64,000 nt of DNA from Vitrella brassicaformis CCMP3155 (taxonomy: Eukaryota > Protista > Chromerida), in assembly GCA_001179505.1 (NCBI GenBank), contig CDMY01000380.1, forward strand, positions 1 through 64,000. The letters run 5' to 3'. Position 1 is the first letter of the stretch; each line of letters opens with the position of its first letter. The notes under the pieces are model-generated. The model saw nothing but the letters and a program-made list of their open reading frames with translations. It had not been told where the DNA came from and did not search any database. Made by a program: the position numbers and the translations under genes. Of the stretch, positions 479-49,890 are shown piece by piece.

Positions 479-2038
479 ATGGAGGAGGTCAACTCAAGCG
501 ACGTGGTCGGTGATCTGGTCATTGATGGCGAGACGGAGTATGATGACTTGCTCGTCGCCGCGAGAATCGCACAGGTAAGGAAGGAAGTTTGTGGGGAAAT
601 GCTTGTGTATCTGCGGATGGTCTTGAGTGCAGTCAGAGTCTCATCGTCTGCAGCAGACCGCAGCGCAGGGCACCTTGCAGAAACTGGCACACCTGCTCAG
701 GTTCGCGTGACAACATATGGCAGCGTGTACCCCCGCTTGGTCGTTTTGTCCTTCCAGTGATGTTCGCTGCGTCGACGATGACCGGGTTGAGGCGGCTCTT
801 TGTCGGCTCGACCAGTGCCCGATTGATGCTGATGATGACAGTCGCCTGAATCAACAAGACGCTACAGCTGTACCCCCTCCTCCCAAGCAGTCGAGTCTTC
901 CCGCTGATATGGATACTTGCGAATCGATCCACACTTTACGGTTGGGAAGGAGCTTGACGGTGGCGCTGCCGGAAACACGCAGGAGGGACAATGGTGGCGA
1001 CGGTGCGAGGAGCGTTGCGGCGTGGAAACGGCTGCGGGATGTTGTGCACGAGTTTGACTGGACGGTGAGGAAAAGTACTCCGTGCTTCTTCGCTCAGTCA
1101 TTTTGATCCTGCTTACTCGGTTGAAGGAGAATGAAGACGATAACAATGATCAAGATCAGCACCCTGCCCGTCGTGCTTCCAGCCATCTGCCGTTGCCTAG
1201 TGATCGATGTCGGATGCAGGAGGACTATGACATGGACATCACCAAAAAGCTGCAGCACATGGAGTCAACGATGGATGACTCGACACCATCAAGACATTGG
1301 CGCGGCAAACATCGATACGAGCCGGCGATTCGAACCAGCGAGCTCAGCTACCATCTCAGGCTGCAGACGGTCAAGTTTCCAATGCCTGTGACTGCACTGC
1401 CTCCCCCTCCGGCCGCCCAGAGCGATGTGGATAGATTGACTGGTGACTTGGCCGTGGCCAGTGCGTATGCCGGTATGCCACAGTCGTGCTACCGTGTTGT
1501 AATCATCGGCGAGATCCATGCTGTTGTCGACAACATGGTCATCGTTCGGGCCAACAAGGTGAGGGAGTACAATACACAAGTCATACGACACGAAATATCG
1601 TTATTGTTTGTGCTTAAAGGAGAGCCGTGCTTTGGATCTGGGGTCCTTCCTGTGTCTGGAAGATCAAACCATTCTCGGACCCGTACGCAGCAAATAGACG
1701 CACACTTGAGGCCGGATGTGGACTCTTAGTGCGTTGTGTGAGCAGGTGTCTGACGCGTTCGGTCCTGTGAATGCCCCATTTTATGTCATATTCGTGGAGG
1801 CACTCAACGAAAGAAGCACGAGAAAAAGACCAGCCGAGTCTTGGCCGACCGATGATGTCGAGGTCGCCCTTGCCAAGCTGCGAAAGGTACAACGTTTGTC
1901 GCGTGGCCGTCATATATGCAAATAAATTTGATCATGTCCCTCCTTTCATTCCAGGGTGCCGGTGTCGGGTGCCTGGAAGCTTATAGCTCGTACCTCCCTT
2001 CCTCGGGACCAGTTGACTCAAGCACAAGTGGTCAATAA
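479..2038 (+). CDS. Multi-exon hypothetical protein, possible OB-fold-like segment
   Basis: About seven phase-consistent exons were traced: MEEVNSSDV..., SESHRLQ..., DVRCVDD..., ...YRVVIIGEIHAVVDNMVIVRANK, ESRALDLG..., VSDAFGP..., GAGVGCLE...GQ*. Two joins rely on AAG acceptors. The family was not recognised. Confidence 0.55.
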
Positions 2039-2760
2039 TGTGAATGCACAGACCCGTATATCAGCAGCGATAATGTAGTGTTTCTGTACACCCTATCGAC
2101 CCAATCTATCAACATGATGGGCAATCTCCCTCCTTCTCCCCCTCCCCCTCCCCCTCCTCTTCTTGCTCCCTTGCCGACAACGTGTGCACCATGGCCCGCC
2201 GATGAGCGATGGCCTCCTGCTTGGCCTTCTCGTCGCTGTCGGGGTGCCTCGCCCTCATCGATAGGAAACGACCTGCTCTTTCGCTGGCCGTTCTCCTGCC
2301 ATTGGGCCAGCCATCTGTTCTTGGTCTTGTCATAGTTGACGCCCGCGACGCCGCTCTGTCGCTCAGCCCCTCTGCACAGTCGCCCTCCCGCTACGCTCCA
2401 TCTCGGCACGGTGCCGCCCAGCCATCGCCTGACATGCACACACATACATACAGATGCATTCATGAGGCTGACAAGAGGGAGCATTCGATTATGTGGTTAC
2501 CTTGGCCTCGTCGAAGCCGTGCTACGCAGAAGTACTTGCGCTGCGGCTTGTGGTCCTCCTGCCATGTAGCCACCCAGGACTCCGACTCCTGGTGCCACCG
2601 AACACCGGTCACATCAGACTGGTGCTCTGCAGTACAATCACAGACAAACACAGGTTACCCGTTTCCGTCCATCTCTGTTGCTCACCTGCGTCCCCAACAA
2701 TGGTCTTCCTTCTCTTGTCGGTGGTCTCGCGGCGGCGGCCAGCGTTGCGGGCTCCCTTGC
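2028..2760 (-). mobile_element. Double-AP2 element copy 1 (frameshifted) with conserved 3' tail
   Basis: HQSDVTGVRWHQESESWVATWQEDHKPQRKYF and QSGVAGVNYDKTKNRWLAQWQENGQRKSRSF are AP2-like. Both domains are frameshifted relative to paralogs. The shared introns and tail are present. Confidence 0.75.
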
Positions 2761-3186
2761 GGCCGAAGAATTATCGTGACAGTCAGAGAAGAAGCGCAGA
2801 TGATTTGTGTTTTTGTCGTTCTTGTCGACCCCATTGATGGTACAATCATTCAATCTGCCGAGATCCCTGCTTAGATCCCCCTGGGTTGGAAGCGGGGTGA
2901 TTACGGAGATAAATGGATCGCTGGAGAAATTTCCCGAGAACCCGCCACTCACAGGCACGCAATTGCAGGCACGTAGAGACATGCCCGAAGATTCTTATAT
3001 GTAAAGTGATGTCTATTTATCCCCCTTCCTAATTCCGATTCTCACTTGCGCCAGTACAAAAGATTCCCAATCGGTGGCTCAGTGAGAGAATACATGGACT
3101 CTCATCCTTCGGAAGTTACCCGACAGACCCACAGACGCGTCAGTGTCCATCGGAAAACGGATCGTAAATAATATGAACTGTCCGCC

Positions 3187-4127
3187 ATGAATTTCTCCTC
3201 CGGGATGGCACAGGCAGTGCTCGTGCTTCTTCTGGTGTGGTTTGCTGGATTGTCCGCAGGGCGATTCATGCGCGCGTCAGAGCCTTTTCTGGAACTAGAA
3301 GCTGGCAAGAATGTGTCCCGCCACCTGCAAACCAGTTTCACCGCTTCACGGAAGGCGCTGACAAATTGCACCCAACCAGGTTTATTGACGACCAGAAACG
3401 AAACGAGTACGGAATGCCCGCGTTTTGTACAGGCCTTTTTGCGTTGACATTTGACGACGCACCAACCGACAACTTCGAGCGGATGTTGGATGTATTAAAA
3501 GAACATCACGTACCGGCGACATTGTTCGTCATCGGAGACAAGCTCCGTGACCCTGAATCAGTTGCGCTGCTGAAGCGCGCCGAAAAGGAGGGTAACAGAC
3601 CAAGGAAACCAACATACGATGAGTGCATTCATTTCTTCCTGCGTCATGGAAGGACATTTGATCGAGAACCACTCATGGGACCACCCCCATTTGAGCAAGT
3701 TGAGCGATGATGAGATCCGGCATGAAATCGAGCGGACCGAGCAAATTTTCCATGAGCAACTGGGACATGGGAGCCGGTTTATGCGAGCGCCATAGTAAGC
3801 TCACGACCTCTTGTTTTAGCCAAAAGTAAAAACTCTATATGTCCTTTCAGTGGGGACGTTGGCAATTTGATTCCAATAGCCGCTGAATACAAATTGACAG
3901 TTGTCGGCTGGTCCGCCTGCTTGGATGTGAAGCCAAAAAAAGGTCGTGTCACAGTGGAGTCTAGACTCTCTGAAGCTGAACGGACAACGCCATCGCAGAT
4001 TTGCTTGCTGCATGACTCATCCCCTCTGGTGAAGACGAAATCCATTGACGCACTCCCGGAAATCATCAAGCTTGTGAGTGGAAAAGGATATAAGTTTGTG
4101 ACACTCGCGGAATGTCTCAAAGGCTAA
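3187..4127 (+). CDS. Secreted CE4/NodB polysaccharide (chitin-type) deacetylase, 4 exons
   Basis: Hydrophobic signal peptide followed by CE4 motifs TFDDAP, ENHSWDH, RAPYG and LLHD, plus the typical YKFVTLAECL end. Three phase-consistent introns. Confidence 0.85.
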
Positions 4128-4960
4128 GGTTCTTCATAAGACACAAGATGTTTTCTTTCTGATTGAATGAGACAATCGACGTTTTCTCGACGTTTTGAGT
4201 GACATTGAGCGAAGGAAAGTCAACGGGCTTCTGAGAGGCTCCTGTGATTCATTCACAGCGAGAAACCACTCAAAAAGTTGCTGGAAAATAAGTGGGTCAG
4301 CTCTGTAGTACGTATAAGCGGGTCAGACGCGTAAGTGGGTCAGCGATCGAACGGGATCATTGATGAAATTCACCACAACCACATCCAATTCGTCATTGTG
4401 CGTGGAAAACGTTTCGGCCCGTGATGACAACAATGATCACCGTAACGATGCGAAGGCGAGGCCCGAAGGGCCGAGCCGAGCAACGACTAGCCAGCGATTG
4501 ACTCAACTCCTCCGCTTCGGTCTGCGCTTCGCGCATCCCTCGCTCCACCATACATGAATCACTCAGATTGACTGACCTGCCTAGGCCACACCCCCTCCCC
4601 TTCGGATATGACTATATTTCATCATGTTTCCTCGACTGTCCAAGTATCTCCTGTCTCCTGACTCCAGATTGATTCTTTTGTCCAGTGTCATTGCATTCGA
4701 CTGTATATTCAACTCTTTCCATGTCCGTATTCTCAACAACGATTCCTGCCATCTACTCAGTCAGATCCATCTATCTCCCTCTTGCCAAGCCCCCAATCCA
4801 TCCATCCATCCATCCCTTCTCAACTATCTAACAAGCAACGTAATCCAAGCCCATCTTTGTCGGTTGTGTACTCTCGTGGGTCTCACACCTCCCTCTCCCT
4901 CTCTCTACTATCTACATCTGTGGCTGTCCTACTCTATCCCCCACCACTATATTTCGATCT

Positions 4961-5150
4961 TCAAGGGCTCTGGAACAACTTCTTCGTGTGGGCCATTCTG
5001 CGCTGCAGGTCGAGTGTTGTGAGCGGGCGCCCCCCGTCGCCGCCAAAGTACGACCGCCCCCCCCCACGACCTCTGCCGCCACGCCCGCCACCTCTGCCAC
5101 CTCTGCCGCCTCTGCCACCACCACCGCCACGCCCATCCTTGTCGTCCCAA
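4961..5150 (-). pseudogene. Orphan RGG-rich terminal exon
   Basis: A tgcag acceptor is followed by [62 protein letters not shown]. It abuts AP2 copy 2 and no upstream exons are visible. Confidence 0.45.
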
Positions 5151-5152
5151 CT

Positions 5153-5874
5153 GCAAATGAGAGGGACAGAAAGGCGGCACCTGTTCTCATGTGTGTGGGT
5201 TTGCTGCAGCACACCAGTCTGATGTGCCGGGTGTTTCCTGGCACGAGAATACCCAGGCCTGGGTGGCTTCATGGCACGAGGGCGGCAAGCCGAAGTTCGA
5301 GAACTTCTACGTTAGTGAGCACGGCTTCCACAAGGCCAAGGTAACCACTTAATCGGCTGAACTTCATGCTGTTATGTCAGCGTCATGTTGCACCTGTATG
5401 TATGTGTGTGTATGTCAGGTGTTGGCTGAGGAGCACCGTCTCGAGATGGAGCGTAGCGGGCGGGCGTCTGTGCGGAAGCCGGCTGAGCACCAGAGCGGCG
5501 TCAGGGGCGTCAACTACATGCAGAGAAACCATGCATGGCGGGCCGAATGGCAGGAGGCCGGCGAGAAGAAGGGCAAGACCTTCTCCGTCAAGGAGCTTGG
5601 CTTCGAGAAGGCCAAGCAGATGGCCATCGCACACCGGCGGGCCATGGAGTCAAGGCACTACACGTTTGTCGGCAAGGGTAGCAGCAGAGCAGCCCGCCGT
5701 AGATGATAGTGAGCGTCCCAAGAGGAAGGGGGGAGGGGGAGAGTGAGTGAGTGTTCATAGTAGCCCATCATGTTGATAGATTGGCAGTAGCCCATCATGT
5801 TGATAGATTGGCTTGATAGGTTGTACAGAGACACTACATTATCGCTGTTGATATACTGGTCTGTGCATTCACAT
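5153..5874 (+). mobile_element. Double-AP2 element copy 2 (5'-truncated in intron 1) with 3' tail
   Basis: HQSDVPGVSWHENTQAWVASWHEGGKPKFENFYVSEHGFHKAK, then an intron, then VLAEEHRLEMERSG...HQSGVRGVNYMQRNHAWRAEWQEAGEKKGKTFSVKELGFEKAKQMAIAHRRAME. The tail runs to GCATTCACAT. Confidence 0.85.
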
Positions 5875-6545
5875 GAGCGCATTGTACGACAGTGCACACA
5901 CTGACTACTGCACACACTGGATGCGTTTCTCAAGAATGCCGGTAGTCAGGAGACCACAAGTGCGGTGGGGCGTTTCCAAGGTGTTGCGTCACGGAAGAAT
6001 CCGATATCTACGAAATCCGTCTAAAGGAATGTCTCAAAGTCTGAAGGTTTCGAAGCAGTGTCTCTTCCTTCTACGCAAAAAAGAAAGGGTCCTTTTTCCG
6101 CAAGTCCGAATGAATGCCTTGTGTGTTCATGAGGACGCTCGAATGAATGAATGAATGAATGAATGAATGGGTTTTCCATGCGAGTTCTCGTTCGCCTACG
6201 GCAAAGTAAGACACACATCCACACGGAGAGAGAAAGTGAGAGAAGATCGTGGATTTCGCAACACCATTGTCCGGCCGTTTGAATTTGCTATGGTGTCTCA
6301 GACCGCGCCCAAGATCGCCAAGCAAGATGGCGCCCCCGATGGCTAAAAGAGGAAGGCCGACGAAGCGATCGGTGTCTGTGAGGTATTCCTGTGGTCAAAT
6401 TAGAAAGGCTAATCATCTATGTCTTGTTGTGTCTGTCGGGTGAGGCTGTGCGTGCTGCTGCCACTGGACAAAACGCAGAAGCAGCCCATGAAAGCAGCCC
6501 AGAACGCCTACTACTACAGACACAAACAGTAGCGAACGAGATGGG

Positions 6546-6580
<35 letters not shown>

Positions 6581-7692
6581 CAGAGAGAGACGTAGCAAAA
6601 GTGACACAACTGACTCTGCAATGACGAATTAAATTTCTGGGTGTCTCCTTTCATGCCTTGCCGATCACATAGATGCGCCTACGCAGGCGCCTATACTGAT
6701 TGTCTCCTCGCCTACATAGGCGCGCCTACCACCATCAGCGCGGAACAAGTGCAAACCCCGCCAGACACTCTATACAGAAAACACGCTGCCTCGTGTAGAA
6801 AAGCAGCCTGATGCCACTGACTACTCCCTGGTGCATGCTTGCGTTTCCTAGCCGATCGGCCGACGGACACACTGCTTCGACAAGCAATGGCAACACAACA
6901 CGTACCGACAGACACACTGGCGTCTATGAGCATATCCGTCTTCTCCTCTACTTCTCCTTCCCCTAGCCACATGTACCTCCATGGATATACCATCACGGAG
7001 GCAAGTGGCGTATATACACAAGAACAAGAGTCAATCACACGCATGCGCACAGGCACAGGCACAGGATAGACACACGTCGTGGACTACATACAGAGGGCGA
7101 CTGACAAGGACACTGGGCTGTGGGGAGGCCCACAGTGGCAAAGGGACAGACAGGCGAGATAGACAGGCAGGCGTGTGTGCAGACATGCGCGGCATCCATC
7201 CATCCATCCATGTGGCGTTTGTGCGCACCTGGCGGAAGAATAGACGTGCCTCTAAACAGCCATCACAATGCGTCCCACATAGACAGAATCACGATGCGAA
7301 CGGTCCGCTTCGCATTAAATGAGAAGAGGAAAGATATGCTCACTGCAGCCCGAATCAACCAGTGCTCTGAGTTTCACACATAGCACAGCAAAGCACTGGA
7401 CAACTGATGTAACCCCTCTTTAGTTGCGAGTCGATGGGAAGTGGACAGAGGCTGATCAGGCTTCACCAGATCTCCCTCCCCTGCGCACTGCTCTCTCCCA
7501 GACCAGCAGGGTCGTCTCAGCGCGTCGATCGTTCCCAAGCGATGGCGTCACCACATCATGCGAGGATTCTGAGACCTTGCAGCCATCCAACTGTATCTGG
7601 ACCTCTCTGTGCTGCCTCTCCTCAAAGAGCATGCACGTATGTGTGCTCCTCCTCTTCTCCCTGTACCGGTATGAGAGATCGCGTCTATGTCG

Positions 7693-8580: not shown

Positions 8581-8893
8581 CTCTGAGATCTACGACTTAG
8601 TCCAGCAAACGACTCGTATTCAGCGGACGGCCGTGGGTTTCGGTCTGGAGGCATCGTGAGTGTGTTCCTTGGGTTCCTCTGTGCATGTGGAGCGTGCGTG
8701 GGTGATTCCTGTTGCGTGTCGTTCGTTTGATTGTGCGTGACACTGGACCAGGCTCTCGGGCTTAGGACGTTTCGTGAAACCGCTCTCTCTTATACAAGCT
8801 CGCTGATAAAGCGCGAGGCGGGTTCGATCTCAGTCTGGTAAAAGCCGAATTCGTGGACAGCGGGTCTTTGTTTCGGCGTTCTTTCAGAGCACA

Positions 8894-11800
8894 ATGGCAT
8901 CAGATCTTTCGGAACTGTATGATGCGTTCGGGAATTACATTGGGCCTCCCGTTGACGAGAACGAGGACGATGACGAGGAAGATATCATTCTCTCGCCGCA
9001 GGCGCATATGGAGGATGAGGATGGGATGGATGCAGAGGGAGGTGCTGGAGCGAGGGATGGGGATACGCTGGAGATGCAGATGGAGGACGTCGAGGGGGAT
9101 CGGTCGGTGGTGCTCTTCGAAGACAAGAAGTTCTACCCCGACGCAGACGAGGTGTACGGCGGAGCGGAGACCCTTGTGCAGGAGGAAGACACCCAGCCAC
9201 TCACTGAGCCCATCATTGCCCCCGTCCGCACCAAGAACTTCGACCTACTAGAGAAGGATCTTCCGTCGACCACGTTCTCGTTTGACTTCCTGAGCGGCCT
9301 CATGTACAAGCGCGAGCTGATTCGGAACATTTGCCTGCTGGGCCATCTGCACCACGGCAAGACACACTTCATGGACATGCTTGTGCAAGAAACCCACGAG
9401 AAGGACTGGAGGTTGGGCAAGTCGTACCGCTACACCGACACGAGGGTGGACGAGCAGGAGAGGGGACTGTCCATCAAGGCCGTCCCGATGTCACTCATAC
9501 TCCAGACCTCACAGGAAAAGTCCTACCTCGTCAACATTCTCGACACGCCTGGTGCGCACAACGAGGGGGACCATACTCACACACGACCGGATAGACGGGC
9601 CTCCTTTCCCTTGCTGGGATATACTTTTGTTTAGGCCATGTTTGTTTCGCCGACGAGGCCGCGGCGGCCATGCGTATCAGCGACGGGGCTGTGATTCTGA
9701 TCGATGCGCTTGAGGGCGTGATGGCAAATACGGAGCGGCTGCTGAAGTTTGCGGTCCAGGAGAACCTCACCATCCTGGTTGTCATCAACTGTATCGATAG
9801 GCTCATCATGGAACTCAGACTGCCGCCCAACGATGCGTACCACAAACTCAGACACACCATCGAAGAGGTCAGCCAGGAAACAATACTCCATAGTACTTCA
9901 TCCATTGTGATCCTTTGAGTGTCGGGTGTGCAGGTCAATAGCATTCTCGAGTCTACATGTTCGATGTTGGGTCATCCCGCCATCCGTGTGTCGCCCATCA
10001 AGGGCACCGTAGCCTTTGCGTCGGGCTACTACCAGTTCGCTTTCACTGTCCACTCATTCGCGCAGATGTACGCCGAGTCATGCGATGAGACGCTCGACCA
10101 TGACTTCTTCGCGAGGTGAGCTCACCGGGGGAGAAAAGAAAGGGTGCGGTGACATGTGGGAATGCCATGCGTACCCATCTACCTAGATGTCTGTGGGGCG
10201 ATGTATATTTCGATCCTGAGTCGCGTACCTTCCGTCGCAGTCCCCCGCCCAGCCGGCCCGGGCAGCCCCGCACCTTCGTGCAGTTCATCCTGGAGCCCCT
10301 CTACAAGATCTTCGCGCACACATCATCCGAAGAACAGCCTGAGCTGGAACCGCTGCTCAGAGAGGTGACAGAGGGAGAGGCACAGGGAATGAGGGGCTCA
10401 CTGGATTGACTTGGTTGTGTGTGATCTAACCTCTCCAGTTGGGTGTGTTCCTTCGCAAGGATGACTTCATTCTTGATACGCGGTCCCTCGTCAAGAAGGT
10501 CTCCCGATCATTCTTCGGGACATCGAGGTGAGGGCAGCAGAGACGCACAAATTGCATCCACGCGGACCGACCTGGATGCATCGTGTGTGACGATAGTGCG
10601 TTTGTGGATATGGTCGTGGCTCACGTGCCCAACCCCCGGGAGAATGCCAGACGGAAGGTCGAGCACATATACACGGGAGACCAAAAAGGACTTATCGCCG
10701 CTGAAATGAAGGCAGGAGAACGCGAGACGCCATCTGAAACACGGTGTTATACATGCACGCATCTGTCCCATTGCAGGATTGCGCGACTGATGGTCATTTG
10801 ATGATTCACACGACCAAGAACTACCACCGGCCTGACTGCGGCCAGTTTGACGTGCTGGGGCGGGTCATGTCCGGCACAATCTACAAGGGACAACGAGTCA
10901 AGGTACGGACGAAGCCGCGCGGTTACGCAAAGCGAACACACACTCATCAAGAGGAAGCCGTCCGATATTGCACTGCATCACCCAATGCAGGTGTTGGGTG
11001 AGGCGTTCAGTTTGGACGACGATGAGGACAAGACTGAGCGGGAGGTCACAGCTCTCTGGATATACGAAGGGAGATACAGAGTAGAGGTAACAAGACGTTC
11101 CGGTTGGCGCCATGTGTCTGACTGGAGCAATCCCTTTCCGTCTCTGGGGTTGTGTCAGGTGAGCCACGTGCCTGCGGGCAACTGGGTTCTGATCGGCGGT
11201 GTCGACCCATCCATCACCAAGACATCGACCATAACCAACATCGACAACGACCAAGAAACAGAAATATTCGCGCCCCTCAAGTTCAACACCAGCAGGTATC
11301 GTATCACCCAGGACATTCGTTGCGTGGAAGGCATCTGTGGTGCTGTCGCCCTTTGCCGTCCGTCTGTTGGCCAGTGTTATCAAGGTGGCGTGTGAGCCAC
11401 TGAATCCCTCCGACTTGCCCAAGATGCTCGAGGGGCTGCGGAAGATCGACAAGTCATACCCACTGGCCAAAACCAAGGTGACTCGCACTCCGGCAACACA
11501 CACAACCCAAGTAATGCGCCATTCAGGTAGAGGAGTCGGGCGAGCATGTGATCGTTGGCACGGGCGAGATAGCAATGGACTGCATGCTGCACGACCTCAG
11601 GAAACTATACGGAGACCTGGAAATAAAGGTACACCTGAAAGAAGACGGTGTATCATTTGGCGAACCTGCTTATGTCTTCCAGGTTGCCGATCCGGTTGTA
11701 ACGTTCTGCGAAACAGTCACGGAGCATTCGACAATGAAGTGCTTTGCGGAGACACCAAACAAGAAGAACAAGGTCTACATGGCAGCTGAACAGCTAGACC

Positions 11801-15632: not shown

Positions 15633-16162
15633 AATTCGTTATCACGTGAAAAGGACTTTCTCTCATGACAAAACAGACTCCTTGCCAGCGCCAGGCAAGC
15701 CTTGAGCCCTTACAGGCCCGAATGAATCGAATGCGACGCATTTGCAGTGAAGTGCTTGTGCGAAACTCACAAACGACGCGAGCCATGACGCGAGCAGAAA
15801 ACACTTCGCCATGCAATGACAGGGCGTCAGTCGAGTCACATGAATGTGTGCGTGCTTGTCAGTCAATCAATGAATTGATTCACTTCATTCATTCATTCAT
15901 TCATTCAGTGAATCACTGCATCACTGCATCACTACAGACAACCCTCCTCGGTTGCTTCGCTTGGGAGACGGCCGTGATGACTCAAGAGAGAATGACAGAG
16001 TGATTCGTTCGTTCATGCCTTATCCAGCGGCACGTCCCATTGCAGAATCACTATCATGACACTGATGTGTGAGACCTCTAAAGAGGAGCAGAGCGATCAC
16101 AGGAGTGCACGCTGAAGTCTGTTTTCACCTGAGAAAAAGTCCGTTTCAGGTGATAACGAATT
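15633..16162. mobile_element. MITE copy A (about 530 bp, about 47-bp imperfect TIRs, AATT at both ends)
   Basis: Left end aattcgttatcacgtgaaaaggactttctctcatgacaaaacagact versus reverse-complemented right end aattcgttatcacctgaaacggactttttctcaggtgaaaacagact. An inverted paralog lies at 38138-39101. Confidence 0.8.
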
Positions 16163-25737: not shown

Positions 25738-27323
25738 GAATTGAGCTAGTGCCTGGCTAGTGCTCATTTGCTCGAATTGGGCTAGAGCCCATTTGCGTCT
25801 TTCAGAAACAACACGTTCGGCAGAAAAAACGTTCGATCACGATCGTATGGACGGCAAAGGAAAATCGGTAGCGGTGTTGTCTTGCTTGCACTACTAGAGA
25901 CACGTCGAGAAGCTTCGTTTTTTCGTTAAACTGATGTGCCCTAAAGCGGCAAGGTGTTGCTTGAAAAAGCTCGCGCGTGCGCCACTGAAGGAGAAATCCC
26001 CAAGGCACGAACTTCCTAAAAGATGCATCTACTGACTGAACACACGAAACGCGCCAGTTTGTGGTGGATGGGATGTTTCTCCTTTGTCCGTTCATGCAGC
26101 TGGTTGAGCTTTGTCTTTCTTGGTTGCCTTTTCGCAGGTCCCTCAGTGCCGCATCGACTTTGTCGAGCTTCTGGCGGTTAACGAAAGAGATCTCGCCGAC
26201 TATCGTGTAGTGGATATGCTTGTAAGGCTCCTCTCTGCAAATGCGGTCACCATCGACTGCCTGCTGCTTCCCCGTTTGGCGCCGCAGCCTCTTCTCGCCA
26301 CTCTCGAAGCCATCGAAGAGGTGCAGGAGCGAATCGACTGTCGAGCCTTCGGTGTTATCTGCAGCCACACCGGTAGGTAAGTGCCGCCAGACACAGCCAA
26401 TGTCTGCATTGCAGTTCAGCAGAACAAGCCTTCACGGCTTTCATGACGGTCTTACCGGTCAGGCACATGCGCAATGGCGCGATGTATTTATTGTCCCTCA
26501 GGTCTTTGTAGTGGTTCAGCAAGTGGCTGCAGATGATTTGGAACGCCCGCATCTGCTCTTCGTTCAATCGGTAACGGCTCGCCCAGTGAACAGAGAACGT
26601 CCTGTCGTCGACCGTCTCAGGCGGCTGCAATGCGGACGCCGGCTGCTCCAGCAGTCGAGTGAGGTCGGCAGCATCCATCGAGTGACCACAGTGTGTCTGG
26701 CGGCACTTCAGGAGGCTTGCTTCATCTGACGTGGCGCGGCTGTGGCCGATTTCATTTACCTTGTTGCGTTGCTGGTGCAGGTCATCGTTAGGCTGATCCT
26801 GGCGGCTCCCATTTGATTGACAAGCCGATTGACAGTCATCGAAGGCAGTCTTCGATAGCCCCTTCAACAGGCGCGCTAGATTGATACATGTCTATTGATA
26901 TCATCGCTGCATATCGATAGGCTGGCATCCAATTGCATCCAGCGGTGCATTGATATACTTGGCGAAGCACGTCTTCAACACGGGCGCAGCAGAAGCGGCA
27001 ACATGGGGGGTGTCTTGTGTTCTTGGTGCAGCCCTCTGAGTACCTGTATGTTATCGACACGTCTGTCTTCGAGATCTGCATGCTTTTCAAGCCCTCGATT
27101 GTTGTCTGCATGTTTTTGAAACTCTCGCCATTGTTGCATGCGTCGGTGTGCTTCTCGCAAACACTCGTGCTGTGCACGTCTCTGTGACGCAGAATTGAAC
27201 CACCACTTCGCACGCTGCTTTCCACCCCTGCCCAATTCGCGGCCCGGGGTGCCCTACCCCTTACTCGGAATTCCGTGAATTGGGCTAGAGCCCTTTTGCG
27301 TCTTTATGAAACAACACGTTCGG
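25738..27323 (-). mobile_element. Decayed Helitron-type PIF1 helicase fragment between 47-bp direct repeats
   Basis: PLRMCLTG-KT (Walker A with a deletion), TGVAADNTEGSTVDSLL (motif Ia, frameshifted) and IVGEISFVNRQKLDKVDAALRDLRK (motif II with DE changed to GE). The repeats at 25774-25820 and 27277-27323 match at 44 of 47 positions. Confidence 0.75.
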
Positions 27324-38137: not shown

Positions 38138-39101
38138 AATTCGTTATCATGCGAAACGGACTTTTTCTCAGGTGAAAACAGACTTCAGGCGTGCACTCCT
38201 GTGATCTCTCTGCTCCTCTCTAGAGGTCTCACACATCAGTGTAATGATAGTATTCTGCAATGGGACGGGCCGCTGGATAAGGCATGAACGAACGAATCAC
38301 TCTGTCAACCTTGCATTCTCGACTCACACGAGCGTGTGCTTGCATGTCAGTCAAGCAATAAATCAATCAATCATGGGTCATTGTCATTCATTGATTCATT
38401 CAGTGAATCACTGCATCACTACAGACAACTCCCTCGGTTGCTTCGCTTGGGAGACGGCCGTGATCCTGGCCTGACTGGCCACGAGGTGGCTGGCCATGGG
38501 TGGTTCACATCACCCATACATGGTCAATATAGCCGGCCACCCTATATAGAAACACCCACCACCCTTCCGGTCGGCTCTTCCGGCGGTAGAGCCGACCGGG
38601 GAGTCCCCTAGGTGGACACTGATGATGGAGACTCTATACTGTACATATGTATGGTTGGGACTCCCAGGTCGGCTCTACCGCCGGAAGAGCCGACCGGAAG
38701 GGTGGTGGGTGTTTCTATATAGGGTGGCCGGCTATATTGACCATGTATGGGTGATGTGAACCACCCATGGCCAGCCACCTCGTGGCCAGTCAGGCCAAGA
38801 TCACGGCCGTCTCCCAAGCGAAGCAACCGAGGGAGTTGTCTGTAGTGATGCAGTGATTCACTGAATCAATGAATGGAATCAATTCATTGATTGACTGACA
38901 TGCAAGCAAGCACACACTTATGTGTCTCGACTGATGGAATGGCAAAGTGTTTTGTGCTCGCGTCTTTTCTTCGCACAAGCACTTCACTGCAAATGCGTCG
39001 CATTCGGATCAAGAGGGCCTGTAAGGGCTCAAGGCTTGCCTGACGCTGGCAAGAAGTCTGTTTTATCATGAGAAAAAGTCCATTGCACGTGATAAGGAAT
39101 T
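38138..39101. mobile_element. MITE copy B (inverted relative to A) containing a roughly 210-bp-arm palindrome
   Basis: It has the same TIRs and AATT ends as copy A. The arms at about 38397-38607 and 38657-38868 are near-perfect reverse complements. Confidence 0.85.
38464..38611 (+). mobile_element. 148-bp mini-Helitron-like insert (5' TC, GC hairpin, 3' CTAG)
   Basis: It starts at gtgA|TC, where copy A has gtgA|T. A 12-bp stem lies at 38567-38599 and CTAG at 38608-38611. The next base is G rather than the canonical T. Confidence 0.55.
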
Positions 39102-39380
39102 CCAAGTGTATGGATGGATACATGGATGAGAATCGATGGGTTCGTATGGGAAGAAGACGTTGATGAGGGCGCCCTTGCGTGATGTGATGCATGCTGTCTG
39201 TCAATGCCATGGTCAAGAAATGGCCATCTCTCCTGTTCGCTAGATAAAGGAGACACTGTATGGCCCTTCAGGATTCTTTTCCGCCTGTGCTCTTTGTTAC
39301 CATGACGAAGGACAGCGGACCACAAGTGAGGGAGGCAGGGTGCGAAAAGGAATACAAAGGTCAACAATGGGTGTTTGTCA

Positions 39381-39570
39381 CTTCGAGGAGGCCAAGCAGG
39401 AGGCCATCGCACACCGGCAGGCCATGGAGAGGCTGCACTACACATTTGTCGACAAGGGGGCAGAGTCTGAGCAGCCCGCTGTAGACGATGAGGAGGGGAG
39501 TGAGGAAGAAGAGGAGGAGGGGAGTGAGTGAGGGTTGTTTATTGTAGCCCATGATGGTGTTAGAGTGTAT
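39381..39570 (+). mobile_element. AP2 element copy 3 (3' fragment)
   Basis: FEEAKQEAIAHRQAMERLHYTFVDKGAESEQPAVDDEEGSEEEEEEGSE* followed by the tail gagtgagggttgtttattgtagcccatgatg. Confidence 0.75.
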
Positions 39571-41044: not shown

Positions 41045-41139
41045 CTAGATTGGGTCACTGAGAAAAGCCTCGCCTGACGTAAATTTCCATCCGGAACGTA
41101 CAGTCATCGGCACCACCTTTCCACGCGAGAGAACTCAGT

Positions 41140-41510
41140 GGTGCAAGACACACATCATGGGAAACGCCCTGCTCTTTGTCCTGCCACCCTCCTGCCATAT
41201 GGCCCGCCTGTGCCTGCTCTTGTCGTAGCTGATGCCCTTGACGCCGCTCCGCCGCTCACACCTTTTCACATACACCCTCCCGCTACGCTTCATCTCGACA
41301 CGGTGCGGCTCAGCCAACGCCTGACATACACACACATACATACAGGTGCATCATGACGCTGACAAGAGAGAGCATGAAGCGCGTTTTCACTTCAGTGGTT
41401 ACCTTGGCCTCGTCGAAGCCGTGCTCCTCGACGAGGAAGTACTCGTGCTTCTGCTCGCCGCCCTCATACCATGAAGCCACCAGGACTCCGACTCCTCGTG
41501 CCACGACACA
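41140..41510 (-). mobile_element. AP2 element copy 4 (internal fragment)
   Basis: WVASWYEGGEQKHEYFLVEEHGFDEAK, the conserved gtaaccac...atgtcag intron, then ALAEPHRVEMKRSG...SGVKGISYDK. Confidence 0.75.
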
Positions 41511-42321: not shown

Positions 42322-43227
<906 letters not shown>

Positions 43228-43419
43228 GCTTGGACAGGAATGACGTTGTTTCATACAGGATGTTCTTTCTCTTGCTTTCAGTACATGCTGGCGCTCGCTC
43301 ATTGCTAAATGAAGCGAGTACTGTAGAAGCTCTACAGTCCAATGTTGATGATTAATTTCTGCTTTCTGCAGGTCCTGCAGAGCCGGCATCGCGATGTATT
43401 TCTTGTTGACATGAGATCG

Positions 43420-44375
43420 AGTGTGTGCACAAGACCAGTATATCAACAGCGATAATGTAGTAGTGTCTCTGTACAACCTATCCAACCAATCTATCAACAT
43501 CATGGGCTGCCCTCACTCTCCCCTCCTCTTCTTCCTCTTGGGACGCTCCTCCTCACTATCATCTACGGCGGGCTGCTCTGCTGCTACCCTTGCCGACAAA
43601 CGTGTAGTGCCTTGACTCCATGGCCCGCCGGTGTGCGATGGCCATCTGCTTGGCCTTCTCGAAGCCAAGCTCCTTGATGGAGNNNNNNNNNNNNNNNNNN
43701 NNNNNNNNNNNNNNNNNNNNNNNNNNNNNNNNNNNNNNNNNNNNNNNNNNNNNNNNNNNNNNNNNNNNNNNNNNNNNNNNNNNNNNNNNNNNNNNNNNNN
43801 NNNNNNNNNNNNNNNNNNNNNNNNNNNNNNNNNNNNNNNNNNNNNNNNNNNNNNNNNNNNNNNNNNNNNNNNNNNNNNNNNNNNNNNNNNNNNNNNNNNN
43901 NNNNNNNNNNNNNNNNNNNNNNNNNNNNNNNNNNNNNNNNNNNNNNNNNNNNNNNNNNNNNNNNNNNNNNNNNNNNNNNNNNCCCGCTACGCTCCATCTC
44001 GAGACGGTGCTCCTCAGCCCTCGCCTGACATACACATACATACATACAGGTGCAACATGCATGGCTGACATAACAGCATGAAGTTCAGCCGATTGAGTGG
44101 ATACCTTGGCATTGTCGCCGTGCTCCTTGACGTAGGTCTTGTACTTATGCCTGCCGTCAGCCTTCTCCCACCAGGAAGCCACCCAGGCCTGGGTATTCTC
44201 GTTCCGGAAACACCCGGCACATCAGACTGGTGTGCTGCAGCAAACACACACACACACACAAGAACAGGTGTTGCCTTTCTGTCCCACTCATTTGCTCACC
44301 CGCGATACTGACGACAGTCTTCCTTCTCTTGTCGGTGGTCTCGCGGCGGTGGCCAGCTGGGAGTCGTCCCAATCG
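43420..44375 (-). mobile_element. AP2 element copy 5 (spans an assembly gap) with 3' tail
   Basis: RRETTDKRRKT exon, WVASWWEKADGRHKYK and the conserved introns. The 3' part differs from 5583-5711 at one position in about 130 nt. Confidence 0.8.
43683..43982. other. Assembly gap (300 N)
   Basis: Run of N. Confidence 1.
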
Positions 44376-44599
44376 CCCGTAGTACTATCATGTTGAAACA
44401 CAACAGACAGAGAAGATGCCCTTCACATTTGTGTTTTCTCGTGCCATGTTTGCATTCACCCCACCTCCGTGCGCCACTTGAGAAACCCCTCCTCTCCGTG
44501 CAAACGCATCATGCGCAAATGGAACTCCTGCATCGCCCTCTGGGACCTCTGTAAAACAAACACGAAGTGACCGAAAAACAAAAGGCGTGGCATGTCAAT

Positions 44600-45690
44600 T
44601 TCTCACCGCGCTGCACAATGCGCGATAGGCCGCGTCGGATATCAACGGGCGTCCATCCCTGTGAAAAAAGATATTGCATAAGTGCCGTGTATATGTGGCC
44701 TGCGTGGCTCCTCTCTCACCCCTGCACACGTGGCTGCACGTAGAGGTAGTAGAAGTCAGATATCGCCATCCTTGCACACCTCTCGATCAGCTCCCGCTGG
44801 CGCGACATCTCCTCCTTCAGCCACCTCACGAGATTGACCGCATACTGCGACACATAATGCAGGAAGTCAGCGCAGGGAATGTCATGCGCAATGCGTACCG
44901 AGAGCTGGTGGGACCTGACGAAGCGATCAAGCTCAGCCCAGGTGTAGATCCTGTCGTTGACAGCCGAGATGAAACGAATCAATTCCTGCACACAAAACAT
45001 GGAGAGACTCATACACATCGACATGTCATTTCGCCTCTGCACCTGCTCGTGGATGCCACCGCCTGCTGAGGTGTTTCTCACATGTTCTTGGCAAGCAAAC
45101 TTATAACTCCTACAGCTTGTCGGGTGCTTACTGTGTGCATGTGTGTTGTCCGCCCACCCCAACATTTGCCCATTTCGCTTGCTAGCGTTCGGTGCGAACG
45201 AACTTACGGAGTGCCAGGCAAACGGACTGTCGGACTTTTGTGCTATGTTATCGAACTCATTTGAACGACGCATGAAGATGCATTCACGTAACACATGAAT
45301 GCAGTCAGCACAGGGCTAATTTCTTAGTAGAATGTGTTGCGACCTACTACCGACACAGATGGGCTTTGATTAGATGGCGGTGTTGTGTACCGGTAAGTAA
45401 GGAGTGTGGTCGGACCCTCTGTCTCCAACCACAACAGATACAGGTTATACCACTGACACAGGCACACAGACAGAGATCCAGCATGACAGGGAGGTCGATA
45501 CTCACCGTGTGTCTGCTACCGACCGTCACGTGCACGAAATGGGATGAGCACCTCAAAACACCACACGAGTGTAGGTAGTGAGTAGGTACGAGTGCCAGTG
45601 TGTTGTTGTACCTCATAGACGGGTATGGTGCATCTCGGGCCGTAAAAGTGGCCCATGAGACGGCATGACATCCATGACCATGCAGCATCC
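44600..45690 (-). CDS. Probable multi-exon hypothetical protein (boundaries uncertain)
   Basis: A splice-bounded exon reads ELIRFISAVNDRIYTWAELDRFVRSHQ...ISDFYYLYVQPRVQ, with flanking exon-like blocks. The family was not recognised. Confidence 0.4.
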
Positions 45691-46608
45691 ATTGTATGTA
45701 CGTGCATTGTTGGTCTGTTATATACGGACAGGTGTTTGTTCGCTACTAAAAACGATGGGCTGACAGGCAGTCCTACCTAACCATGTCGGTCAGTTATGTT
45801 TGTTTCCCTGACACTCTGTACTGCCAGTGCTGCAGGGTGGTGGACAAGAAGATATACCGCTGCGCTGATGAAGGGAGGGAGATGCCAGCATCTCATGACT
45901 GACTGGACAGCTTGAGGCCACTGCGAGTGGGGGGGAACTAGGAAGATCGAGGCGAGTATCCGGAGTGAATTGAAGGCAGTGGGTACGACCGCCCCAAATG
46001 TGCCGAAAAATATTTGAAAATCGGCAAACCACCAGAGGAAATGATGGCCGTTATTTGTACTGTGACCAGCTGCATGCACGTGTGGTGTGACGTGTGGGAC
46101 TCATGACCTCTGTGTGTGTGGCTCAGTGACGGATATTCTCACGGATATTCTCTTCACTCACATCGGATCTGGCATGTGTAAACAGCTCGAAAAAGGGGAA
46201 ATACACGAGGAATTCAGGCCAAGTCCGTTGCTTTTTGTCATGGGAAAGGCCCCCCTTGGTTTCGACCCCTTTCAAATATCCACCGCCTTGTTTAAGATGT
46301 CACGGACCCATGAAAATTCGGGGGGTGGCGCTTCCGAAACATGTAAACGTAGTGTAAATGTCGCTCTTTCCCAAGTCTAGGCGGCTTTAGGGGTGTGTTT
46401 GGGTCTCATTCCTGATGCCTTCATGGCTCGTGACCCTTATGCGCCAAGGTGATTTTTTGCGTTAGAATTTGACAGGGTCCTTTCACCTTTTACTCACACT
46501 TTCGTTTACTCACCTTTCATTTCCTTGTTTATCGGCGGACTTATTTCGGAATTCGAACCTAGGAAGTATCGGCGGGCTGAGCGCTCCGCGCTGACGCTGA
46601 CCGACGGC

Positions 46609-48094
46609 ATGCTGCTGGAGCCCTTCTCAATCACCGACCCCACCGTCTACTCAACAGGCGGTGCCCTCTTCGCCTGCGGAGTGCTGGCGTCGGCCGCCGG
46701 CATGGGCGGCGGGTGAGACAAAGACAAAGACAAACATGCCGCGTGCAGTGCCACTCCATCTCACTGGTGCCATGTGTTGTATGCAGTGCCTTTTATGTGA
46801 CGATACTCATGTTTGTCGGGGGCATAACGCCGCACGACGCCGTGCCGATATCCAAGGTGAATGATTAAGGAAGGAAGGAGGTCGGCCCGACGTCTCCAGC
46901 TGCTGGGCGTGTGGCCTTGCTTTCTTTCAGGGGGTCATCTTTCTGGGATCTCTGACGGCACTGTCGTACAATGTGCTCAAGAGACATCCTGTGGAAGGGG
47001 GCTCGATCATCGACATGGTGCGCGAGAGGACGATTCACCCGCTCTGCAGTGTATTTGTTGGTGGCCTTGACTTGGATCTGCATGCAGAAGTTGGTGCAGA
47101 TGACCGTCCCTTTGGCACTCGGCGGCACCATGTTCGGTGTCCTGCTTCTCAACCTCACTCCCGCGTACCTGCTCACGGGCATTCTGGCCGCCATTGTCAC
47201 GTTCGTGACATTCAAGACATTCAGAGGAGCCCTCAACGCCCACATGCAAGAGAAGATGTCTTCCCTTTCCAGCAAGGACGAGGCAGAGGACAGCAGGCGC
47301 TACACGGTCCCGCATTTCAATCGAGACGAGCTCGAGGAGAGAAACAGTCTGAGCTCGCCCCTGCTCGGCCATGGCCCTCTCGACTCTGCTCTGCAGTCGT
47401 CTCGTGTCATTGTGGACTGCCTCCTTATGAGCCTTCTACTGGTGGCTGTCATTCTGCTGGGCTACAGTTCGCGTCAGTATCCCCACTCCCGACACGCCGC
47501 GAAAATTAGAGGAGGAATGTGCTTTGCGGCCTTTCTGCTGTCTGTGTGGCTGCACGGGTACTTTGTGGTGAAGATATTGAAAGAGGGAGGCGAGGATTGG
47601 ACGCTCCCTCGCTGCTGCATCTACGGGCTAGTGGCTTTCGTTGCCGGCATCTTTTCGGGGCTCGTCGGCATCGGGTAAGCCACTCAGCGAGTGACGGGCC
47701 GCCACCGCTTCATGTCTCACCATCCATGTCGATTAGCGCTGGGATTATCTTTTCTCCCTTCTTCCTGCTAATGCATGTCGAGCCCCTGTCAGCAGTGGCG
47801 TCGGCGGCCACCTGCGTGCTCTTCACCAGCACCTCCACCACAGCCCAGTACGCCCTTATGGGGCGGATACCCTTCGATCGCGCGGTTGTCTACGGCATCG
47901 TGGCGGCCGCGTCGTCTTCTCTCGGTGTGCGGTGGGCGGCATCGCTGACGAGACACAGACGGCGGTCGTACTTGATCTTCATTGTGGCGATTGCGAGCGG
48001 CCTGATGGCGGTCCTGCTGGTGGTCAAGGTGGTGATTGATGTCGCCCCGGGGGTTGATTGGGGTGATTGGGGGTTAGAAGACGCTATGAAATAG
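46609..48094 (+). CDS. TauE/SafE-family (sulfite exporter-like) membrane protein
   Basis: LASAAGMGGG.AFYV, AVPISK, KRHP...IIDM, LGGTMFGV, FSGLVGIG(A)GIIFSP and ASAATCVLFTSTST, with many transmembrane stretches. Confidence 0.85.
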
Positions 48095-48403
48095 CGCTTA
48101 CTGGATGCTGATTGACCTGTCGATGAGACAATCAAAATTGAATGACGACAAGCACACGAATCAAGTCGACCTGATGTCACGTGCACCGCACCTAGTCAAC
48201 GGAGGTAGGAGTCGATGGCGCACTGCCACACACGCACGAATCCAAAAACACGCAGATGTACACGTCTCAAAGCGAGGCAATGTCAGTTGTATCCCTTTAC
48301 CCGTTCTTCCCCGAGCAGCCCCCTCGTACAGAACGCGTACAAACGGTCAATGATGTGAATGCGAGTATATCAACAGCGATAATGTAATGTCTCTGTACAA
48401 CCC

Positions 48404-48869
48404 ACAAGACACGCTTAACGGACCTCCGTTGCTGGCAATATACACCCCATTGCCGTCGGTGACCTCCATTGCTGGCAACGGACCTTNNNNNNNNNNNNNN
48501 NNNNNNNNNNNNNNNNNNNNNNNNNNNNNNNNNNNNNNNNNNNNNNNNNNNNNNNNNNNNNNNNNNNNNNNNNNNNNNNNNNNNNNNNNNNNNNNNNNNN
48601 NNNNNNNNNNNNNNNNNNNNNNNNNNNNNNNNNNNNNNNNNNNNNNNNNNNNNNNNNNNNNNNNNNNNNNNNNNNNNNNNNNNNNNNNNNNNNNNNNNNN
48701 NNNNNNNNNNNNNNNNNNNNNNNNNNNNNNNNNNNNNNNNNNNNNNNNNNNNNNNNNNNNNNNNNNNNNNNNNNNNNNNNNNNNNNAAGGTCCGTTGCCA
48801 GCAATGGAGGTCACCGACGGCAATGGGGTGTATATTGCCAGCAACGGAGGTCCGTTAAGCGTGTCTTGT
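48404..48869. mobile_element. Exact 83-bp inverted repeats flanking a gap, interrupting an AP2-element tail
   Basis: 48404-48486 is the exact reverse complement of 48787-48869. The tail consensus gtacaacc|tatcaagcc is split at this point. Confidence 0.55.
48487..48786. other. Assembly gap (300 N)
   Basis: Run of N. Confidence 1.
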
Positions 48870-48871
48870 AT

Positions 48872-49345
48872 CAAGCCAATCTATCAACATCATGGGCTAC
48901 AGCCAACAACCCTCACTCACTCCCTCTTCCTCTTCTTCTTCTTCCTCCCAGCACTCAAAATCGCCAGACACAGCGCTTGGTTTGATCACTCCAGCGTACA
49001 CGCTGATGTCACCCTGTTTGCCGCCGCCCTCCACCTTCTCAGCCGAGCTACAATAGACAACCCTCCCTCACTCTCCCCCATATCTGTACAATCTGTCAAG
49101 CCAATCTATCAACATCATGGGCTACAGCCAACAACCCTCACTCACTCCCTCTTCCTCTTCTTCTTCTTCCTCCCAGCACTCAAATTCGCCAGACACAGCG
49201 CTTGGTTTGATCACTCCAGCGTACACGCTGATGTCACCCTGTTTGCCGCCGCCCTCCACCTTCTCAGCCGAGCTACAATAGACAACCCTCCCTCACTCTC
49301 CCCCATATCTGTACAATCTGTCAAGCCAATGTATCAACATGATGA
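48872..49345 (-). repeat. 225-bp tandem repeat (2 full units plus the start of a third)
   Basis: Units start with caagccaat at 48872, 49097 and 49322. Each unit is an AP2 tail plus an unrelated core. Confidence 0.9.
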
Positions 49346-49890
49346 GCTACAATAGACAACCCTCCATCACTCTCCCCTCCTCCTCCTCTTCTTCCTTGGG
49401 CGCTCCTCTACGGGCATCTCAACGCCCCCCCTGTCAAATCGATAGTGCAGCCTCTCCATGGCCCGCCGGTGTGCGATGGCCATCTGCTTGGCCTCCTCGT
49501 CGCCGCCCTCCTTCCACTTGGCCCGCCAACTGTTGGTGCTCTTGTCGTAGGTGACGCCCCTGACGCCGCACTGGTGCTCAGCCGGCTTCTGCACAGCCGC
49601 TCGCCCGGTGGCCACCATCTCGAGACGGTGCTCCTCAGCCAACGCCTGACATACATACATACATACAGGTGCAACATGAGGCTGACATAACAGCATGAAG
49701 TTCAGCCGATTAAGTGGTTACCTTGGCCTTGTCGCCGTGCTCCTTGACGTAGAAGGTCTTGTGCTTATGCCTGCCGTCAGCCTTCTCCCACCAGGAAGCC
49801 ACCCAGGCCTGGGTATTCTCGTTCCAGGAAACACCCGGCACACCAGACTGGTGTGCTGCAGCAAACACACACACACACGAGAACACAGGT
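49339..49890 (-). mobile_element. AP2 element copy 6 (deletion in the second AP2 domain)
   Basis: HQSGVPGVSWNENTQAWVASWWEKADGRHKHKTFYVKEHG, an intron, then HQCGVRGVTYDKSTNSWRAKWKEGG-DEEAKQMAIAHRRAME...RPRKKRRRRGE*. Confidence 0.8.

Follow-up and report, generated by a model that had tools for sequence, protein, structure and literature searches.

Recombinant copies of a two-AP2-domain gene module in a 64-kb stretch of the Vitrella brassicaformis genome

The first 64,000 nucleotides (nt) of contig CDMY01000380.1 of Vitrella brassicaformis CCMP3155, which match this contig at 100% and are called the window in what follows, contain six dispersed copies of a unit that encodes a pair of AP2 domains. 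Most of these copies are non-functional genes. The account that we consider most probable is that they belong to a rapidly turning-over, recombining subfamily of AP2-pair genes, the local debris of which fills the window. Two observations appear to be new, namely that the copies are recombinant mosaics and that their intron and 3' tail are more conserved than their exons, with nonsynonymous changes concentrated in the β-sheet of the second AP2 domain (AP2-2).

The AP2-pair unit, its copies and the gene family

The unit is about 0.7 kb long and consists, in this order, of the 3' part of an upstream intron, the exon of the first AP2 domain (AP2-1), an intron of 72-78 nt, the AP2-2 exon, the encoded C-terminus of which is short and basic, and about 170 nt of non-coding 3' tail. 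A self-BLAST with copy 2 as the query recovered all six copies that a preliminary description, made from the sequence alone, had counted (E 1e-32 to 1e-129; pairwise identity 67-92%). Pfam AP2 (PF00847) was found in both exons of copy 2, with 38.6 bits in exon 1 and 48.9 bits in exon 2, and both pass the gathering score of 33.3. For a conserved motif of 27 nt, 0 chance matches are expected. Pairwise comparison including 1.5 kb of flank revealed no similarity between copies outside the unit. The copies in the window are the following.

2038-2813, minus strand: copy 1, a pseudogene with at least three frameshifts; upstream basic exon (partial) ending at 2686, upstream intron 2685-2627, AP2-1 exon 2626-2501, conserved intron 2500-2429, then the AP2-2 exon, tail end at 2038
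5153-5874, plus strand: copy 2, the best-preserved copy; upstream intron (3' part) 5153-5209, AP2-1 exon 5210-5340, intron 5341-5418, AP2-2 exon 5419-5706 with stop codon TGA, tail 5707-5874 with a 27-nt internal duplication
39381-39567, plus strand: copy 3, a fragment reduced to the ~35 final codons of AP2-2 (C-terminus of type B) and the beginning of the tail
41170-41510, minus strand: copy 4, fragmentary or a pseudogene; deletions of 10 nt and 1 nt in the AP2-1 exon, conserved intron, AP2-2 exon truncated past β3, without a tail
43426-43682, minus strand: copy 5, 3' half; the 41 codons of the C-terminus, at 99% identity to copy 2, and the tail
43983-44437, minus strand: copy 5, 5' half; basic exon and intron of the upstream part, AP2-1 exon with the intron that follows it, AP2-2 exon up to its nucleotide 42, then a gap of N
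48364-49307, minus strand: copy 6, disrupted tail
49308-49896, minus strand: copy 6, core of an annotated protein (P0005); AP2-1 exon, intron, AP2-2 exon

Two more copies with the intron and/or the tail of the cassette were found on other contigs, L001 at the very end of CDMY01000815 and L006 on the 7.8-kb contig CDMY01000967.

The best protein matches are from V. brassicaformis CCMP3155, in which copy 6 corresponds to P0005, an annotated protein of 163 amino acids (aa). A profile search with the AP2 pair against 1.84 billion representative proteins gave 2089 matches, 29 of them at E<=1e-30, and the ten top-ranked of these 29, which were looked up, are all from Vitrella (P0008-14, P0016, P0017 and P0020). 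In these ten proteins, profile positions 14-169 are matched as one stretch. The number of pairs per protein ranges from one to four, and the pair often forms the extreme C-terminus; the N-terminal regions in front of it are diverse, and some contain PHD fingers. The older paralogs L005, L010 and L012 carry the inter-domain intron at the identical codon; their intron sequence is unrelated and they have no tail. In addition, P0017 (L010) has a phase-1 intron directly before the HQSDV motif, as do copies 1 and 5. Since exons and introns are arranged in the same way in older AP2-pair genes of Vitrella, the cassette is best regarded as the 3'-terminal module of an ordinary gene family, which would comprise the phase-1 intron, the AP2-1 exon, the conserved intron, the AP2-2 exon and the 3' untranslated region.

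Woo et al. 2015 (eLife, PMC4501334, Appendix 6) reported "one cluster of 50 homologous apiAP2 genes" in Vitrella, and because this cluster is known, we take the six copies to be a young branch of an expansion that has already been reported. The window copies share with the cluster the species, the tandem AP2 pair with a helical linker, the position of the inter-domain intron and the phase-1 intron ahead of the first domain, and they are 50-65% identical at the amino acid level to P0010, P0017, P0018, P0006 and others. In contrast to the cluster, they form a much younger subgroup with a near-identical intron and a shared 3' tail, and they are mostly fragments or pseudogenes scattered among unrelated genes; mosaic recombination, hypervariable β-sheet residues or a shared 3' boundary are not described in PMC4501334. 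The subfamily would consist of young, Vitrella lineage-specific genes for small, basic-tailed proteins in which two AP2 domains are joined by a long helix. The preliminary description had suspected a link to the multiplication of ApiAP2 genes, and the family does belong to that process in Vitrella.

Scans of other collections returned little of relevance. Bacterial and archaeal genomes, a collection that cannot contain Vitrella, gave no relatives, JGI metagenome contigs gave only three distant AP2 loci, with the Vitrella transcripts not among them, and viral contigs gave AP2 domains at 27-47% identity only and no match to the tail.

Mosaic copies, uneven divergence and a common 3' end

Mosaicism was assessed with informative sites in triplets of sequences and a maximum chi-square test with permutation. 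The copies turned out to be recombinant mosaics (permutation p<=0.0005), with breakpoints near copy 2 positions 5518, 5547-5552 and 5729. Copy 6 pairs with L001 up to position 5547 of copy 2 and with L006 from 5552 on. In the triplet of copy 2, copy 6 and L001, all 13 informative sites at 5513-5545, which lie in the variable patch of AP2-2, join copy 6 and L001, while the C-terminus joins copy 2 and L001. Two C-terminal types exist, one with a GKGSSRAARRR tail (copies 2 and 5, L001 and the transcripts) and one with a lysine/arginine-rich tail (type B; copies 6 and 3 and L006). The two C-terminal types together with the mosaics therefore indicate that paralogs swap segments, and it is because of this exchange that a near-identical core with a sharp homology edge can stand in unrelated flanks. 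In each of two DNA runs, 7-8 distinct paralog contigs lose their likeness to copy 2 exactly at 5518, where the variable turn begins. The mosaic relationships along the sequence between paralogs are those of concerted evolution by gene conversion, and such exchange after duplication, by gene conversion or recombination, homogenises the intron, the linker, the C-terminus and the tail and keeps the homology edge sharp. For a young unit in unrelated flanks, recombination or gene conversion between paralogs is at least as good an explanation as mobility.

Conservation differs between the parts of the unit. The inter-domain intron (gtaaccac...tgtatgtcag), present in copies 1, 2, 4, 5 and 6 as described before, is 94-97% identical among copies 2, 5 and 6 and L001, compared with 80-91% for the exons. 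The tail is 80-92% identical among copies 1, 2 and 5, L001 and L006, except for copy 1 versus L001 (71%) and L001 versus L006 (74%); its identity goes down to 64% for copy 6 and lower still for copy 3. Judged from the sequences compared, these identities run opposite to what purifying selection on the protein would be expected to produce. The earlier statement that all copies but copy 4 carry the tail, without poly(A), also proved correct; copy 3 has the tail start only, at 60% identity, and the interruption of the tail of copy 6 had been overlooked. Likewise, the stretch of about 130 nt with one mismatch that it had noted between two copies holds as 99% identity over 123 nt between copy 2 (5583-5705) and copy 5.

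The ratio of nonsynonymous to synonymous divergence (dN/dS) over whole exons is about 1-1.7 among copy 2, L001, L003 and L004, the latter two being public transcripts. Codons 31-59 of exon 2 form a variable segment in which dN is 0.14-0.42 and dS 0.03-0.21, dN exceeding dS in six of six pairs, whereas dN is 0.03-0.15 and dS 0.05-0.29 outside this segment. Copy 2 and L001, both of which are genomic, differ nonsynonymously at 19 codons and synonymously at 2, and changes of this type are clustered, unlike the even spread expected of pseudogene decay. In the structure that AlphaFold predicts for P0001, with strands at 58-61, 66-73 and 76-83 and a helix at 89-111 (predicted local distance difference test, pLDDT, 82-91 there), the variable residues of AP2-2 fall in β1, in the β1-β2 turn, at alternate positions of β2 and in β3, and the tryptophans and an alanine interleaved with them are constant. 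Aligned through Pfam, the variable positions would coincide with the base-contacting arginines and glutamate of plant ERF1 in the AtERF1-DNA structure. The β1-β2 turn, alternate β2 residues and β3 of AP2-2 change much faster than the rest, and mostly nonsynonymously. The pattern may be read as diversifying selection on binding specificity, or as distinct specificities that were retained, in a scaffold homogenised by gene conversion; relaxed constraint in dying copies also contributes. Intact members would be nuclear DNA binders.

A further property of the family is its common 3' boundary. The 3' end ...GCATTCACAT is shared by copies 1, 2 and 6, L001 and L006, and the tail ends with ...GTGCATTCACAT in copies 1 and 2, L001 and L006 and with the variant GTGCACACAC in copy 5. 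About 16 nt past GCATTCACAT are still common to copy 1, L006 and copy 6. The 5' ends vary: copies 1 and 5 reach about 190 nt further by way of the upstream exon, copies 2 and 6 start in the intron, and the 5' ends of copies 4 and 3 and of L006 lie later than those of copies 2 and 6. At least one paralog shares sequence upstream of the 5' break of copy 2.

We also considered and dropped an intron-borne small RNA: an Rfam search with the conserved intron and the tail gave a single match at E=0.21, and single-strand folding of intron and tail was not significant (z +0.7 to -1.25; tail z -1.0 to -1.25). Independently of this, the 3' ends of the upstream and the inter-domain intron (5177-5197 and 5390-5410) are 81% alike, which hints that the AP2 pair may have originated by tandem duplication of an intron-plus-AP2-exon unit.

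Integrity, number and expression of the copies

Intact gene status is not demonstrated for any copy in the window: four are broken or fragmentary, copy 2 is without a start and AP2-2 of copy 6 is damaged, which agrees with the earlier view that most copies are truncated or frameshifted. Copy 2 has two intact AP2 exons but no in-frame ATG ahead of AP2-1; its similarity to copies 1 and 5 begins within the upstream intron, and a normal donor and an upstream exon of the type seen in copies 1 and 5 are absent. The frameshifts of copy 1 are genuine, as independent DNA contigs reproduce them; a contig of run X4 covers 1900-2478 with zero differences, and a contig from a 2025 marine-sediment metagenome covers 2269-2636 with one difference. 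This metagenome (runs X7 and X14-X16) contains near-identical Vitrella sequence that includes both the frameshifts of copy 1 and the 5' junction of copy 2. As for copy 3, an annotated gene model (39367-39531, plus strand) uses the fragment as its final coding exon, with about 35 last AP2 codons and an acidic tail.

In copy 5, the AP2-1 exon as assembled carries a 1-nt and a 3-nt deletion, and the N gap at 43683-43982 has collinear sides of equal orientation, with about 122 nt of the unit (copy 2 positions 5461-5582) missing. Transcript L003 is 100% identical to copy 5 over 44 nt before and 131 nt after the gap and bridges it in frame with 122 nt, so that copy 5 is likely continuous here. L003 and exon 1 of copy 5 differ by indels, and the transcript may derive from a near-identical paralog of copy 5. 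The tail of copy 5 ends 17 nt away from the end of a convergent Ras/Arf-type gene.

Copy 6 has lost about 13 codons of its AP2-2 exon in frame (β3 and the start of the helix); what follows is a basic C-terminus of type B and then the start of the tail. This tail start, together with unrelated sequence, is part of a 225-bp unit that is tandemly repeated 2.3 times at 95% identity (48871-49396). Next to it lies an inserted element with perfect inverted ends of 83 nt (48404-48486 and 48787-48869) around a second N gap, 48487-48786, which is thus outside the AP2 coding sequence. The element looks like an insertion of the miniature inverted-repeat transposable element type, its interior being N. Beyond the insert the tail resumes with its last 39 nt (48402-48364) and ends in GCATTCACAT.

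The number of copies in the genome was estimated from DNA contigs placed at >=80% likeness, whose summed depth is a rough guide. In three DNA data sets, the cassette of copy 2 reached 7-15 times the depth of unique flank (54-120 versus 7-8 in run X4, about 330 versus 26 in run X1 and 24-42 versus 4-5 in metagenome X7), which suggests about a dozen copies genome-wide at this likeness. Copy 1 stands at single-copy depth, and depth over the tail does not exceed that over the AP2 part.

The family is expressed and spliced, as seen in transcripts L003 and L004, the MMETSP protein P0002 and RNA contigs. The inter-domain intron is spliced out in L003 and L004, and the transcripts show use of the upstream acceptor as well. 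One RNA contig links an upstream exon of the copy 1 type to the AP2-1 exon of a paralog, and another, with a depth of 338, lies over the 3' half of copy 5. An RNA contig also runs past the tail of copy 5; it possibly comes from the convergent neighbouring gene.

Origin of the copies, related systems and meaning

We propose that the copies arose from small duplications at the DNA level, which would often have included only part of a gene and would thereby have left 5'-truncated fragments, pseudogenes and terminal exons for neighbouring gene models, and that recombination between paralogs acted on them afterwards. The shared 3' boundary would then be the end of an ancestral tract that was duplicated or converted. 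Several points weigh against this account of a recombining gene subfamily. In five or six copies the 3' ends fall within about 15 nt of one position while the 5' ends differ, a pattern equally in line with copying that has a defined 3' end; the common boundary is real, and it is the sole feature not predicted by simple duplication. An intron divergence of 3-6% predicts alignable co-duplicated flanks and none are alignable; an account based on gene conversion therefore needs older duplications with decayed flanks. The copy number comes from summed contig depth rather than from an assembly census. The dN/dS values derive from a small number of sites, the four sequences include two Trinity-type transcripts, which are possibly chimeric, and recombination inflates such tests. 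Finally, none of the recovered members of the young subfamily is complete from start to stop, so that function is unproven. Had the copies lain in large segmental duplications with shared flanks and evolved under purifying selection, the mobile-cassette idea of the preliminary description would have been in difficulty; there are no such duplications and no purifying selection (dN/dS about 1 or higher), and the idea is neither refuted nor positively supported thereby.

A non-autonomous mobile element, whose conserved tail would be recognised by an enzyme that copies it in trans, with frequent truncation at the 5' end, is in our estimate rather unlikely. Such an element would combine the common 3' end ...GCATTCACAT of copies 1, 2 and 6, L001 and L006 with variable 5' ends, and it would fit the unrelated flanks, both orientations and the occurrence on three contigs or more, of which two are short or carry the copy at their end, the low intron divergence among about a dozen copies and the conservation of non-coding parts to the same or a higher degree than coding ones. 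However, no inverted or direct repeats that could represent terminal inverted repeats or target-site duplications flank copy 1 or copy 2, no poly(A), A-rich tract or simple 3' repeat follows any tail, and the 3' end does not fit the Helitron rules (5' TC, 3' CTRR, subterminal hairpin), the unit being devoid of Rep/helicase. In a search for catalytic domains (nuclease, recombinase), Pfam gave AP2 only in the copies and likewise in the ten best paralogs, save for a helix-turn-helix (HTH) domain in P0014, and no open reading frame (ORF) for an enzyme lies in or beside any copy. As to a transposase or a partner family with the same tail, on which a cut-and-paste element would depend, the unit holds the AP2 ORF only, and the contig-depth data, in which tail depth equals AP2 depth, show no sign of such a partner. 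Also against it stand the likeness of copies 1 and 6 and L006 for about 16 nt past the supposed end, the paralogs that share sequence upstream of the 5' break of copy 2, the presence of the same module in ordinary older genes, the mosaic structure of the copies and the 5' junction of copy 2, which is identical in the environmental sample with no polymorphism seen. It is also unlikely that the unit is a DNA module that amplifies itself, with a 3' end that is recognised, being copied to new sites by a mechanism perhaps of the template-switch or rolling type and diversified at its DNA-contact residues. What remains of the mobile or self-amplifying cassette that had been proposed before is a dispersed, intron-retaining and recently amplified DNA-level unit with a common 3' boundary; mobility of the transposable-element kind, which the missing termini, target-site duplications and enzyme as well as the variable 5' ends speak against, is not supported.

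It is quite unlikely that the copies are passengers, that is, AP2 gene fragments captured or transduced by other repeats of the region, such as inverted-repeat elements or Helitron-like inserts, and carried along with these. The inverted-repeat element within the tail of copy 6, the repeats of 25-50 copies (4229-4639) and about 4 copies (4764-4955) just upstream of copy 2 and the large inverted repeat that lies next to copy 3 and recurs at 15.6-16.2 kb are in line with it, but no repeat is consistently attached to the cassette, and the neighbouring repeats vary from copy to copy as well as in copy number. Assembly artefacts, in which collapsed or mis-joined repeats would in part produce the apparent frameshifts, mosaics and truncations, could be suspected from the two N gaps inside copies, the family members on short contigs or contig ends and the indels between L003 and exon 1 of copy 5. 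We consider them very unlikely, as copy 1 and both the junction and exon 2 of copy 2 are reproduced in independent runs, including the 2025 marine-sediment metagenome, and the mosaic breakpoints involve copies from different contigs. Retroposition from unspliced transcripts, with the shared 3' end as a polyadenylation site, is highly improbable. The common 3' end with variably truncated 5' ends, a combination that a LINE-dependent, SINE-like element would show as well, and the transcribed tail would fit it; yet one or two introns are kept in every copy long enough to show them, although transcripts are efficiently spliced, no A-rich tract stands behind any tail, and the RNA contig at copy 5 continues past the tail, possibly because of the convergent neighbour.

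The sequences around the copies contain repeats of other kinds. The repeat at 4229-4639 reaches 25-50 times unique depth in three DNA data sets and is thus far commoner than the AP2 unit; it holds a TGTC microsatellite. Two non-coding repeats, 4764-4955 upstream of copy 2 and 45089-45164 upstream of copy 5, recur on L001 at 9047-9238 and 8816-8891 (86% and 98.7% identical, respectively), where they precede a further AP2 gene (568 aa) of contig CDMY01000815. They could represent small pieces of mobile DNA, or else promoter or 5' modules that these genes have in common. Inverted dispersed repeats unrelated to the AP2 unit connect 1-295 with 26455-26760 and 15633-16162 with 38138-39101 (78-95% identical), and the window is repeat-rich at 36-50 kb. 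Between copies 1 and 2, the stretch 3133-4409 (plus strand) has a summed RNA-contig depth of up to about 6800 and GT..AG joints at ~3590-3652 and ~3794-3851; some of these RNA contigs differ from the window and may be derived from a paralog. A composite transposon formed by copies 1 and 2 around this 3.1-4.4 kb gene was rejected on account of the 69% identity of the two copies, the state of copy 1 as a single-copy pseudogene and the very high RNA-contig depth and splice joints of the stretch. Inverted AP2 tails that seemed to lie at 13.6-13.9 kb are not copies; a purine-rich stretch and a 25-nt inverted repeat with weak likeness to the tail start are found there. A contig joint from 2953 to 4981, conceivably a paralogous locus without the 2-kb middle, was left unused because one side rests on 26 nt at 80% likeness. 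On contig CDMY01000538, P0014 (L011 4001-6826), a 730-aa model, combines AP2 pairs with a Tc5/CENP-B-type transposase HTH (Pfam E=5.6e-7), and no catalytic domain was detected in it.

The P0001 model shows a three-stranded β-sheet packed on a helix, and its best PDB matches are AP2 proteins. The closest solved sequences and folds are those of the Toxoplasma gondii mitoribosomal proteins AP2IX-6 and AP2VIIb-2 (PDB 9fi8, 9hqv, 9g6k and 9i05; PMC11652630), which are likewise small and have two AP2-like domains. AP2IX-6 matches the Vitrella pair across the linker, the second AP2 domain and a short segment beyond (phmmer E=4.9e-9, Foldseek E=3.6e-5, 35% identity). The Toxoplasma proteins are single-copy, conserved across Myzozoa, targeted to mitochondria and rRNA-binding, whereas the Vitrella copies are multi-copy and fast-evolving, with basic tails resembling nuclear localisation signals and no shown presequence; the likeness is one of sequence and fold. 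It shows that the design of a pair with a linker is old in the lineage, and it does not imply RNA binding or a mitochondrial location of the Vitrella copies. The tandem AP2 repeat of PfSIP2 on SPE2 DNA (PDB 6sy0; Foldseek E=3.5e-3), second in closeness, resembles the pair in that two AP2 domains act as a single DNA-binding unit, but identity is only 20-22%, and PfSIP2 is a single conserved Plasmodium gene that is not amplified. As cited in PMC4501334 (Magnani 2004, Balaji 2005), AP2 domains of mobile elements include those of HNH-AP2 homing endonucleases and the arm-binding domains of lambda/Tn916-type integrases. The AP2/integrase DNA-binding fold is common to these and the window copies, with weak structural matches to the integrase arm-binding domains 3jtz and 2wcc (E ~1-2). 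Unlike the mobile-element proteins, the window copies have no HNH, tyrosine-recombinase or other catalytic domain in or adjoining them.

In malaria-type parasites, the role of main specific transcription factors falls to the ApiAP2 proteins. For chromerids, Woo et al. (PMC4501334) state that duplication was important and say no more. The locus described here offers a close view of ApiAP2 expansion in a free-living relative, in which a two-exon AP2-pair module would be duplicated piecemeal, copies recombine and most of them die as pseudogenes. For annotation this is a warning, as many small "AP2 genes" of Vitrella are fragments. Should the module be self-amplifying after all, it would be a natural generator of new sequence-specific binders and would give a direct view of how the ApiAP2 family expands. 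With change concentrated in the predicted DNA-contacting sheet and a scaffold and non-coding parts that are nearly identical, the copies provide a testable model for the turnover of binding specificity.

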